64,000 nucleotides of DNA from Auanema rhodensis (GCA_964057225.1 OZ059897.1:6510001-6574000); one strand, 5' to 3'. Counted from the stretch's first letter, positions 838 to 53,663 are shown. Numbers and translations: made by a program. Notes: generated by a model not told the origin, from the letters alone.

Positions 838-3375
838 TTACTTTCCACGTGGCTGATCGTAGGTTAATCCGGCTGTTCGGCTGCCGAGCTCAGCAAGTTG
901 GAATGTCTCAACCTCAGCTCCATCGGGCTTAGCCTAAAAGCAATCAAGTAAGCCATGCGATTTGATATGTGAATATGTGACATACCTTACAAGCAATACC
1001 AATAGATTGGTTATCATTTGGAACATTGAAGATTGTGTATGTTCCTGGATGAAGGTAGATGGTATCAAATCCATTGTGTCTGTAGATACAGGCAATAGTC
1101 TTGATGACAGTCTTGTCATCTTCCAATTCACATGTTTGTTCAATCTTAGATTCCAATGTAGTCAAATACCTAGAAAATGAAATATGTTAATGCTTATATC
1201 AACTCATGAACCAACCATCTGCATCCAATAACACGATCGACAGATGATCCATCAAGTTCGTGGGAGATGCATCCAACTGGACGATGTCCAAAGGTCTCTT
1301 GACGAACCTGAATATAATCATTCAAATAAGTCTCATAACGAAAACTTTAATTTACTTGGCATTGATAGACAGTTCTATCTTTACGATAACGATCTCCGTC
1401 ATATAAGTTCTTGTTCTGATATACACATCCGATGACATTCTTTTGGCATCTTCCTCCATTTACTTTACAGTAATAGATATAGTCTCCATTCTAAATTATA
1501 CTAATATATCAATTTTCTTTTCATATTATATCATGTAATTAATGTCATTCTGAACTTCACATCATAACGTTTTTAAACAAAAAAAAAAGCAGTTTATAGT
1601 CTTGATAACTTGTTTTGCAATCATTAAATACAAACCTGCCACTGTTGTCCAACTGAATAATGTTGACCAGCATGAACACAGCCAACGCTGCAGAGTTGCA
1701 CAACTCCACTGCTTTTCTCTTGGCACTCATATCTGAAATTTAAAGATATAAATAAATTTATAGATATCCTTTTCTATATACGTATAGTCTTCGAGATCAT
1801 ATTTTTCCCCAATTTTCAAGACGCGAGACTTATCATGGGTTAAACATCCTTCAACTGTAACCTTCAAGAAACCGTTGACTCTCGAACATTTGTACTCGTA
1901 CGTATTCTGCAATAAACGAATAATTAAATTAACGAATTTTAGTGCAAAGTAGAAGTTAAAATGAAAATTAATTCAAATTAGAATATTATATAAACCTTAG
2001 GATCTCTCCAAGTTTGTTCAGGTTGCATAACAGCTCCTTGTTGACTGACACAAGCTGTGAATTCAAATGCAAGATATCCTTCAGCATCTATAAGTTTTTA
2101 AATTCAATTAATGTCTTCTGTCATGATGGCATACCAACAACACATTTGTTAACGAATCCTTTCTGTTGGAATTCTTCACCAATCTTTACGCGGTCCCCAC
2201 TTGGTGTGAAACATCCTTGTGGTTGAAGCTCACCTCCTTGACATACATAAAAGTATTTTCCTATAATAAATAATAATAAATATTCTATTTTAAATTGCTT
2301 TGAGATGTTATATTCATTCAAATGCCAATCATTTTATAATTGATTATGGTTGCCAAAACATCATTGTTTTTTCTTTTATTATTACACATCGTCATTGATA
2401 TCAAAATTTGACCAGGTATATTCACAAGAAAAGACTTTCTCTCTCTCTCTCTCTCTTTCTCTCTCTCTCTCTCTCTCTCTCTCTTATTACAAACGTTTTG
2501 AAGAAGAATCATTGAACGTTCATATTCACGTGAAACTTTTTTTGCACGTGAAATACTTTCATTTTAATTTCTAGCGTCGCTCTCATGAACGGTTGTATCT
2601 TGTTGTAGAACTGTGATTGTTCCATCATGGGTGGCCTAATAATTGTGTGAAAATTAAAGAAAACAACCTCTATCATCAATGATAATAGGATCAAAAACGT
2701 TTGTTACATCAGAACGATCAAATAAAATTGGAATTATAATCAAATTACAGTATTGCTTTTGCAACTATTTTTTACAGTTTTTGTTTGTCTCTCACTCTTT
2801 TTCTATATACAATGGGTGGCTCGATTTGTTTCAACTAACCTCGTTCAACTTGTTCTCCTTCGCTCCACCATTTGGCAGGTTGGCCATTTCCGCTGCTCCA
2901 GCATCTGTAAGACACGATGGTGTTAAAATGATCCAGAATTCATCAAAAAACTTGATGGGAAATTTTGAAAAAAAAAATTTACAAATCTATTTTCAATTTT
3001 AGAATTTCTTAATATAATTGGATTTTGCACTGTCGTTGCAGATCATTTTGATGAAAAAAAAATTTGTGAACGTTCAATCGAAATGATTTTCGGTGATTCG
3101 TCTCTGATTGAGGATGTGCGCATTGCATAAAATATAAAAAAAGGCAAACGGAACTAATTGACGAATCGCAAAAAGCAGATTGATTTTCATCAATTTCAGG
3201 TAAAAATTAAATAGAAACAGGTGATATATTCATATTTCAAAAGTACAAGATTGAGAAAGAGGACGTTTTTGTGTTTCAAAGAAAAATTTAGAGGAAGTAA
3301 GGCATACCTTCCAGTTGAATCAGCAGCAATGAATGCTGGTAGCGAAAGCAAGAGTAGAAGTGATGCAGAAATCAT
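838..3375 (-). CDS. Secreted cysteine-rich repeat protein, MIG-18-like (fibronectin type I-like repeats), about 10 exons
   Basis: Spliced frame with GT-AG introns: signal peptide MISASLLLLLSLPAFIAA, then RCWSSGNGQPAKWWSEGEQVERGKYFYVCQGGELQPQGCF, YEYKCSRVNGFLKVTVEGC, VGCVHAGQHYSVGQQWQNGDYIYYCK, ending TYDQPRGK*. The family call comes from the recurring GC..G..Y..G..W...Y.C units and is from memory. Confidence 0.8.
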
Positions 3376-51900: not shown

Positions 51901-53663
51901 AAATAGGCCGAAATAACTTTAGATACACTCACCTATTATTTGTAACATAATCAGGTGAAAAAATGGAAAAAAATGAGTCGAACTGTGTTAGAAACAGAAA
52001 AGATTGAAAAGCGAAAGATAAATATTGTGAGCAAGTTGGAAGCTCTACGCATCTACTACGCCCACTTGAACACTACCTATTGAATAGCACACAAAATGAA
52101 TGAACTGATTGCTTATGAGCCGAATTTTCAAATTTCAAGCTTTAGAATATGAAATTGAGATCTCTTAAGCTTGAGCTGCAAAACTTTTTATTCGGAGAAA
52201 AACTTGCTTTTACTGTTTAGATTTCCACCACTTGGAGTTCTACTAGCTCGACGTACCATTTCCGATTCCCGTCTGAGAGTGTCCATTGATGGAGTTGTAG
52301 AAGACTTAAAATATTAAAAATATAATAACATATATAAGCTGGAACATTAAAACCTTATCTAATTTGGACCGTGGACTTCGCATCGAGTTATTACGAGTTG
52401 CAAACTGTACATGATTAACGGGAACTGACGGTGATGATGTTGATACTGAAAGATATTTTCTTCCCTCCCTAGTATCAGATGCTTGTAACTTTCTCTCTGT
52501 TTCCTTTTCTGATGATGGCGGAGGAGTTCTACAATTTTGTATTTGTAAAATCATTGATTACACATTCTTTTATATTTTGCACTATGTATGCTAATTTGTA
52601 TTAAGTACATGACAAACTCACGTTATGACGTGAAACATCAATTGAACATTTATTTTATTTTTATGGCATATAAAGAGCGGTTGAATATAGTATATAGAGG
52701 TTAGTAACTTTCAACATTTTGTTCGATTTCAATAATATGACTACAACTTTTATTCCGATAAAATGAGGAAAAAGTGAAAAAAACTTCATTACATTTCATT
52801 GTTTGTTGTTTATATTATATTTAAGCATGTTTATGAAAATTCGCTCATACTCCCTATGCACTAATATACGTTCTCTTCAATTTTGAATTTAATTTAGAAA
52901 TTCTAAAATCGAAGAGATCTCGCAGTCAATGAGGCTTAAGAGAAAATTCCAATTTCAGCTCGAGTGGTCATCTGAAGAGTGAATCTCGTCATCTTTATCC
53001 TCGTCTTCCTATGATTGCTCTTCCTTTTTTTATTTTTTTGTTCCGATTTGACAGTTTAGTCTGTCAGACCACAGCTTTTCGAAAATCGGGTCTCTTCTAT
53101 ATTATTTTACCGCTACACTCCCTAGAATTCTTAATTCTTCAACTCTCTCCCCCAATTTCGTTGACACTTCTCGACTCTCTTTCTCTGCTCCTCCATATTT
53201 ACCAAATTCTTCGATGCCACTCAACAATGGTATACGAGAACTCCGAAATCAGACTGGATATTGCTGCGAAAAACTTTATGCATTTCGCTTCGATCTGCAT
53301 AGTTAATTAACCATAATTTTATTTTCATCGTGTTTATATGATACTAATTAAAATTTCGATTGAAAGAGAGACATCTCATTAAAACTAATAATCCTAAACT
53401 AACCTTAGAGGGATGTTTGTTATGTGGTTATTAGCTTCCGGAACTTGATATATTTGTTCATGTTCCTCTTCAACTATACGAACTATATTTTTTTCTTCAA
53501 AGCTTCTCCCATTAACTGTACCGAAGGCAAATCCCCGCGGCTTCAAATTAGATCCTCAATTCATATTTTTCATATAACATCATAAAAAAATTACATGAAT
53601 ACCTTTAAGTAATGGAGAGCTTCGCACAATGGACGATGACCGTCGTCCGACTTCCATCTCCAT
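48941..53663 (-). CDS. Largely low-complexity protein with AKAP2_C/MISP-like motif; multi-exon, 5' structure uncertain
   Basis: Exons include TVRPKTYGFPKWRSSDALSASL, APPPLPPKS and ESIVAAEIRHAREREEELRRSRSELGLPTLE. The last exon ends KDYSKHIY*. Putative start MEMEVGRRSS follows an ATTCAG acceptor. Confidence 0.7.

Follow-up and report, generated by a model that had tools for sequence, protein, structure and literature searches.

A 64,000-nucleotide stretch of the Auanema rhodensis genome (GCA_964057225.1 OZ059897.1:6510001-6574000; hereafter the window) carries a dispersed family of short noncoding elements that share the 11-nt word ACAACCGCTCA. We found that this word is one half of a two-box module. 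On the complementary strand, where the word reads TGAGCGGTTGT and which is the likely functional direction, the module has the form T[C/T]ATTT, 18 variable nt, and then TGAGCGGTTGT. The two boxes and the distance between them resemble the initiator (Inr) and the motif ten element/downstream core promoter element (MTE/DPE) of Drosophila core promoters. Judged by its sequence features, the family is very probably a protein-binding site. The reading that we favor, at a probability of roughly 0.55, is that each module is a fly-type, TFIID-type core promoter that would fire independently of its host gene.

Copy number and two-box architecture

An earlier note on this DNA, written from the sequence alone, had listed exact copies of ACAACCGCTCA at 14768(-), 27250(-), 36620, 38885, 40600, and 41565. 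All six were confirmed, against 0.01 expected from shuffled sequence; the strand on which the note had read them is opposite to the likely functional direction. The copies at 38885 and 41565 lie within a single 100%-identical 2680-bp segmental duplication and count as one. A search of the window allowing at most one mismatch gave 13 matches compared with 0.42 expected. Among these were 2586(-), 10341, 31027, and 31059(-), all of which the note had given as near variants, and also three positions that it had overlooked, 11792(-), 39751, and 60687, all of which lack the second box and may be decayed or chance copies. Of the other variants in its list, the core at 7107(-), CCAACCGTTCA, has two mismatches, the one at 52675(-) reads TCAACCGCTCT, and the one at 27205 is a partial inverted half-site. 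The sequences by which the note had extended the similarity beyond the core, CTTxxTC and TTGAATAT, proved to be weakly conserved. The note had placed the copies in introns or between genes; so far as can be discerned, all window copies are noncoding.

The genome-wide figures given here are pattern counts in the 181-Mb nematode assembly, each compared with a control pattern, which for the 11-mer was the reversed word. ACAACCGCTCA occurs 218 times (16 for the control), and GAGCGGTTG occurs 1264 times (179 for its control). The density of the exact 11-mer in the window is about 80-fold above the genome mean, in part through a family of paralogous genes described below. That family is found only on contig C5 and was thereby ruled out as the source of 11-mer clusters on other contigs. 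The genome-wide 11-mer count is inflated because a DNA polymerase repeat carries the word in its coding sequence by chance: 8 of 30 sampled exact 11-mer loci fall in the coding sequence of this Maverick/Polinton-like repeat and lack the partner box. The repeat is present in multiple copies (loci L008, L016, and L021-L026, on contigs C1 and C3) and encodes a protein-primed type-B DNA polymerase (PF03175) with the motifs DFxSLYP and YLDTDS. Another 14 exact 11-mers genome-wide correspond to one per unit of a histone array (loci L027-L030, C3:5.258-5.342 Mb). The 3546-bp unit of this array contains H2B, H4, and H3 genes on one strand together with one TTATTT-type module. With TTATTT and other core variants counted, we estimate by rough extrapolation that the genome holds a few thousand modules. 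Of the 100 listed GAGCGGTTG sites and the 100 listed matches to an Inr followed by GCGGTTG, none falls in the intervals 0-5.6 Mb or 10.7-13.3 Mb of contig C1; the second of these intervals contains arrays of U2 genes. The motif is limited to certain chromosome domains, which are presumably rich in genes. Literature searches for the motif sequence returned nothing relevant.

When the flanks of every copy were laid out, a second box, AAATGA on the strand read in the earlier note, was seen at a constant distance from the core. With the A of T[C/T]ATTT taken as +1, the core TGAGCGGTTGT occupies +23..+33, with CGG at +27..+29 and GGTTGT at +28..+33. In the window, GGTTG begins 27 nt past the A of TCA[G/T]T far more commonly than at any other offset, and the combination of T[C/T/A]ATTT with GGTTG at +28 occurs in 11 cases, compared with 0-2 at each of the other offsets. 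The box T[C/T/A]ATTT lies at most one base from its expected place at 21 of the 24 exact cores outside repeats (T[C/T]ATTT in 20 and TAATTT in 1). Genome-wide, the pattern TCAKTY-N{11,31}-GCGGTTG has 690 matches, compared with 69 for the control. We tallied the gap in the first 100 of these matches listed, for which 21 gap lengths were permitted. A gap of 21, which places GGTTG at +28 and is the exact fly gap, was found in 50 matches. The adjoining gaps of 20 (GGTTG at +27) and 22 (GGTTG at +29) were found in 15 and 16 matches, respectively, so that 81 fall within ±1 of the fly gap, and the remaining 18 gaps together account for 19. The strict TCAKTY box is also present at 31 of 72 GAGCGGTTG sites on C1, among the matches listed.

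Resemblance to fly core promoters

Core promoters that depend on the DPE or MTE are textbook in flies and rare in humans. The fly DPE has the sequence RGWYV(T), is strictly spaced, and occupies +28..+33; the MTE contact has been revised to CGG at +27-29 (PMC5580651). A computational DPE consensus, CRWMGCGWKCGGTTS, and an Inr consensus, TCAGTYKNNNTYNR, have also been reported for flies (PMC4803293). The downstream box of the worm module has GGTTGT, a form of RGWYVT, at +28..+33, with CGG at +27-29, G at +24, and W at +25. Among the 100 listed matches, about 94% of sites have A or T at +25, and +24 is enriched for G. The worm core agrees with the fly computational consensus at 9 of 10 aligned positions (fly motif GCGWKCGGTTS). 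The upstream box has the pyrimidine at -1, A at +1, and T at +3 of a TCAKTY-like Inr. In 30 nonredundant copies picked by the core alone, Y(-1) was present in 24, A(+1) in 22, and T(+3) in 26, with a run of T's at +2..+6. The strict spacing of the two boxes is likewise a property of TFIID-dependent, TATA-less fly promoters.

Candidate factor-binding sites lie on only one side of the modules, as they do in those promoters. The interval -60..-11 (10-nt bins -60 to -20) contains 25 E-box-like sites (TCACGTGA and ACGT boxes related to it), which frequently occur in pairs, and none were found from -10 to +200. E-boxes of the form TCACGTG are also concentrated beside modules in the window, at 2526-2551 and 31078. 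The octamer-like word ATTAGCAT shows no enrichment over the window as a whole (7 compared with 4 expected), and four of the seven occurrences (31111, 39815, 49371, and 52588) lie at most 70 nt upstream of modules. Altogether, E-box or ACGT sites accompany about a third of copies, and ATTAGCAT accompanies some, in the range -15 to -70 on the side of the initiator, the expected place for promoter-proximal factors to bind. No conserved TATA box was found at -30 of the modules. With candidate factor sites only upstream and no TATA box, the arrangement resembles a TATA-less core promoter with proximal sites.

If the modules are core promoters of this kind, TFIID would recognize both boxes as one unit: TAF1/TAF2 would contact the initiator, and TAF6/TAF9 would contact the downstream element. 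Transcription by RNA polymerase II (Pol II) would begin on the A of T[C/T]ATTT and run on through the GC-rich core. The modules are not the main promoters of the surrounding genes and would probably act as autonomous internal or antisense start sites.

Several observations weigh against this reading, and the first concern the boxes themselves. DPE and MTE are reported not to be enriched in C. elegans (PMC3730108). In the window, the degenerate RGWYV occurs 8 times at +28 compared with about 4-5 times at other offsets, and the excess consists wholly of GGTTG. The worm box, limited to (C)GGTTG, is thus narrower than a generic DPE and would also suit a sequence-specific factor. The start box is T-rich, T[C/T]ATTTT rather than the fly TCAGTY; C at -1 is no more frequent than T, and TCATTT and TTATTT are equally frequent. 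In addition, one window copy, in the gene that we call paralog A, retains the core without the start box.

Other contrary points come from the genomic context, which is known for the copies whose surroundings were readable. Each of these is found within a gene or in an intergenic stretch, and both orientations occur; none is at the 5' end of a gene, which is a difference from the fly elements. Five window copies lie in the same phase-1 intron of tandem signal-peptide paralogs, antisense to their hosts. One copy (L010) is in the sense orientation in the intron that separates the S4 exon of a K+ channel gene from its S5/pore exons. Another (L011), also sense, is in intron 1 of a 3-hydroxyacyl-CoA dehydrogenase-like gene, with the GxGxxG exon about 340 nt upstream and the next exon starting from +192. 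A third (L003) lies beside or inside a VWA-domain gene on the other strand. In the histone unit, the module is between the H4 stem-loop and the H2B start and points into the 3' end of H4. We scanned 46 flanking open frames with Pfam, and seven were recognized: VWA, ion-channel pore, 3HCDH_N, LysM, a kinase fragment, the Tc1/mariner helix-turn-helix (HTH), and DNA_pol_B_2. A survey of ATG-initiated open frames on both sides of each copy was suggestive only. We dropped TTTCAG splice acceptors as a proxy for host-gene orientation, as they were noisy and dominated by the five paralog copies.

The element could instead be a composite site for a sequence-specific factor or pair of factors, for example a multi-zinc-finger, Myb-like, or RUNX-like protein acting together with a partner. 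Such a site would serve an enhancer, silencer, or chromatin-architectural function rather than mark a start, and it would resemble Inr plus DPE by coincidence or convergence. The specificity of the downstream box for (C)GGTTG, the persistence of the core in paralog A, and the copies within genes, which run in either direction without facing gene starts, all favor such a site. The earlier note had pointed to the Myb-family core YAACNG, which CAACCG fits literally; the common variant TGCGGTT presumably fits the RUNX core YGYGGTY. A Myb core does not explain a second box at fixed spacing, and the Inr/DPE match is the more specific one. The core is nearly always accompanied by the Y-A-TTT box at one exact distance, both boxes and their spacing coincide with fly Inr and DPE/MTE down to G+24, W+25, and CGG at +27-29, and the other factor sites lie solely on the initiator side. 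On balance, we regard a composite factor site as possible but rather unlikely.

The region between the boxes bears on a different kind of transcription unit. In the 30 nonredundant copies, the GC content is 0.26 at +3..+22 and 0.53 at +23..+33, and there is some sequence preference at +15..+22. The modules could be mini-genes for short capped RNAs akin to PIWI-interacting RNAs (piRNAs). Pol II would initiate at the A, the U at +3 would be the first base of the RNA, and stalling at the GC block (+24..+33) would leave precursors about 30 nt long. CATT satisfies the YRNT start, with T at +3, and the variable spacer, which runs from +3 to +23, measures exactly 21 nt. The intronic position of copies in either orientation is matched by the dispersed intronic "Pristionchus-type" loci of other nematodes, which are also tiny, autonomous Pol II units with a YRNT start (PMC6436959). 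Nematode piRNA loci are recognized by a GTTTC motif about 40 nt ahead of the 21U; they have a high melting temperature (Tm) inside the 21U and a low Tm directly downstream, where more GC makes a "bad terminator" (PMC6436959). No consistent upstream GTTTC/Ruby motif was found at the modules, whose low-GC spacer and GC-rich block just downstream reverse this Tm profile, and the preference at +15..+22 also argues against this reading. The modules number in the low thousands at most, by rough extrapolation, far fewer than the >10,000 piRNA loci of C. elegans. A piRNA-like function is therefore improbable.

The bipartite layout, in which an AT-rich box lies about 30 nt from the other box, also recalls the proximal sequence element (PSE) bound by SNAPc, which would drive small nuclear RNAs (snRNAs) or stem-bulge RNAs, and the window contains a stem-bulge RNA gene. 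A PSE is expected about 55-65 nt upstream of such genes. Upstream of the U6, U2, and spliced leader 1 (SL1) genes that we located in the same genome is a different element, GAAWACGGTGCACRYGC, and not the module, which ruled out this candidate and leaves it scarcely credible. An Rfam scan of 30 motif-centered loci showed no RNA adjoining the copies except histone 3' stem-loops.

The snRNA and SL loci (L031-L048; C1:6.375-6.386 Mb, C1:10.96-11.28 Mb, and C3:6.74-7.10 Mb) form arrays. The U6 array is a tandem one with a 226-bp unit repeated at least 48 times, the U2 arrays have units of about 2.46 kb, and SL1-like RNA genes are in 252-bp arrays that carry the canonical SL1 leader GGTTTAATTACCCAAGTTTGAG. 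The element GAAWACGGTGCACRYGC is common to the upstream regions of U2 and SL1, and the U6 version is looser. The stem-bulge RNA gene (Rfam RF01656, 43 bits) is at 13421-13483 (+) in the window, about 110 nt downstream of an inverted repeat (12724-12956/13080-13312) with 233-nt arms that are 97% complementary.

Conservation in paralog introns and the question of origin

Evidence for selection on the module comes from the tandem paralogs, designated A to E, each of which has a copy in the same intron, always antisense to the gene. These genes encode secreted, cysteine-containing proteins with signal peptides; the family is old and lineage specific and has no Pfam match. In the window, they occupy 38553-39600, 41233-42280, 36388-37300, 10110-11020, and 6480-7345(-). 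Paralog D, for example, has its ATG at 38553, its phase-1 intron at 38854-38948, and a TATA box of its own upstream of the gene. The family is confined to C5:6.27-7.0 Mb, with at least 14 exon matches. The core and its partner box recur in this intron in another member of the family, 230 kb away.

Amino acid identity among the paralogs in the adjoining exon is 27-41%. When the intron was aligned across four paralogs, the sole invariant block was A.CAACCG.TCA (10 of 12 consecutive columns); the remainder of the intron is unalignable, splice sites excepted. The chance that such a block would survive in four neutral sequences is negligible; therefore, the core is under purifying selection. This result upholds the statement of the earlier note that the core is better preserved than its flanks. 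The partner box has decayed to differing degrees: paralog C has TAATTT, paralog B has shifted the spacing to +29, and paralog A has lost the box and has two changes in the core.

The intron position bears equally on the origin of the family, since a shared position in paralogs of 27-41% identity indicates inheritance rather than insertion. The earlier note had interpreted the copies as relics of an old mobile family, namely miniature inverted-repeat transposable elements (MITEs) with the core in their terminal repeats. The copies are dispersed, exact copies form local clusters, and the two inverted pairs that the note described in the window, 27205/27250 and 31027/31059, are present. Their spacings and interiors differ, however, and pairing is not a property of the family: strict facing pairs CAACCGC...GCGGTTG occur nowhere in the 181 Mb at 20-50 nt and at only 4 loci at 51-81 nt. 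The alignments show nothing in common beyond the two boxes, in either interior or flank, no target-site duplications were found at the two window pairs, and the two-box anatomy with fixed spacing is unlike a terminal inverted repeat. An origin from miniature transposons is thus very improbable. What stands of the proposal that an element was domesticated is that the family is real, dispersed, and noncoding, with a constrained CpG-containing core.

As a precedent, the note had cited the C. elegans MITEs CERP2 and CELE2, whose inverted motif pairs act as promoters. The precedent is genuine, and its motifs, m1 TGCGCCTTTAA, m2 GGTCTCGMCACGA, and TACKGTA (PMC9757741, Table S1), differ from both of our boxes. 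We rejected identity with the m1m2 motif of HIM-17-bound germline promoters, as its published consensus bears no resemblance to either box. The two systems are alike in being dispersed two-motif signals of rhabditids with a preferred spacing and many copies outside active promoters. They differ in that the C. elegans pairs lie in MITE inverted repeats with element bodies, whereas the Auanema module has no body and is almost always unpaired.

In the secreted-protein paralogs, a start at the module would yield RNA antisense to the 5' exons. The intronic promoters of Plasmodium var genes offer an analogy, and no more than that, as they too provide each member of a secreted or surface family with a conserved promoter-like intronic element directed antisense over the 5' exon. 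The organism, the sequence, and the level of evidence all differ, the Auanema case being known from sequence. One could extend the core promoter reading to a lineage-specific system in which modules scattered over introns act as Pol II mini-units that are independent of their host genes, stall at the GC-rich block, produce short capped or antisense RNAs, and control the paralogs in the manner of var introns. We consider this extension unlikely. If true, it would be a regulatory RNA system that uses a promoter type thought to be absent from nematodes.

Window copies, their neighbors, and implications

The copies in the window range from canonical modules to remnants. The paralog D module, at 38885..38919 (-), is canonical: it has TCATTT with A(+1) at 38917 and the core TGAGCGGTTGT at 38895..38885, antisense in the host intron. 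An identical module at 41565..41599 (-) belongs to paralog E in the duplicate of this segment. Paralog C has an exact core at 36620..36654 (-) with an Inr box weakened to TAATTT, A(+1) at 36652, and paralog B, at 10341..10376 (-), has the core TGAACGGTTGT with TCATTT and GGTTG one base off at +29. In the 45-nt intron of paralog A, a decayed core, TGAACGGTTGG, remains at 7107..7117 (+). Between paralogs D and E, a module at 40600..40634 (-) has an exact core and TTATTT with A(+1) at 40632.

Elsewhere in the window, a canonical module at 27226..27260 (+) has TCATTT with A(+1) at 27228 and an exact core at 27250-27260. The partial inverted half-site that faces this core, at 27205..27214 (-), reads AACCGCTCGA (TCGAGCGGTT on the other strand) and lacks an Inr box of its own. 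About 430 nt downstream of this module, the opposite strand carries a tRNA-Gly(TCC) gene (65.8 bits; 27655-27726, minus strand). At 14744..14778 (+), TTATTT with A(+1) at 14746 precedes an exact core at 14768-14778, and at 52650..52684 (+), TTATTT with A(+1) at 52652 precedes the core AGAGCGGTTGA at 52674-52684, with ACGT boxes and ATTAGCAT (52588-52595) upstream. A module that the earlier note overlooked, at 49331..49365 (-), has TCATTT with A(+1) at 49363 and the core TAGTCGGTTGT, with ATTAGCAT 8 nt upstream.

The facing pair at 31027..31069 consists of overlapping units. The minus unit is canonical, with TCATTT, A(+1) at 31059, and the core AGAGCGGTTGT at 31037..31027; the plus unit is degenerate, with a TCT start and the core TGAGCGATTGT at 31059-31069. 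The terminal TCA or TCT of either core doubles as the start box of the partner unit. A CACGTG box (31078-31084) and ATTAGCAT (31111-31118) are nearby.

The remaining copies are variant or doubtful. At 2520..2596 (+), the core TGAACGGTTGT (2586-2596) follows two TCACGTGAAA E-boxes (2526-2551), and the nearest TCA would put GGTTG at +31. The copy at 39751..39786 (-) is doubtful or decayed, with the core TGAGAGGTTGT, the box TTAGTT, and a spacing of +29. Two one-mismatch cores without a start box, TTAGCGGTTGT at 11792..11802 (+) and TGACCGGTTGT at 60687..60697 (-), may be chance matches or decayed copies.

Several other features of the window were noted in passing. An open frame at 42741-43133 (+) matches the Sleeping Beauty/Tc1-mariner transposase HTH (PF25787, E value of 3e-11), and the opposite strand has a 178-codon open frame at 42792-43325. 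A minisatellite at 43690-44730 has a 33-nt unit (16.5-nt half-unit), with several frames open for 340-384 codons; a 97-nt "tRNA-Pro" called by ARAGORN inside it (44584-44680) is probably a false positive. The open frame at 25136-25435 (+) has a weak protein kinase match (PF00069, under the gathering score) and is probably one kinase exon. The window is unusually rich in long (CT)n/(GA)n microsatellites, at 1-100, 2430-2490, 16045-16110, 16820-16910, 18720-18770, 20870-20960, and other places.

For annotators, the motif is no repeat to mask. If the reading as Inr plus DPE is true, recognition of downstream elements by TFIID would be older and more widely retained than the picture from C. elegans suggests, and it could narrow to one specific word and be used inside genes. 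A rhabditid that carries roughly a thousand or more fly-like copies would then raise the questions of what its intragenic, often antisense modules transcribe and whether they regulate their host genes.

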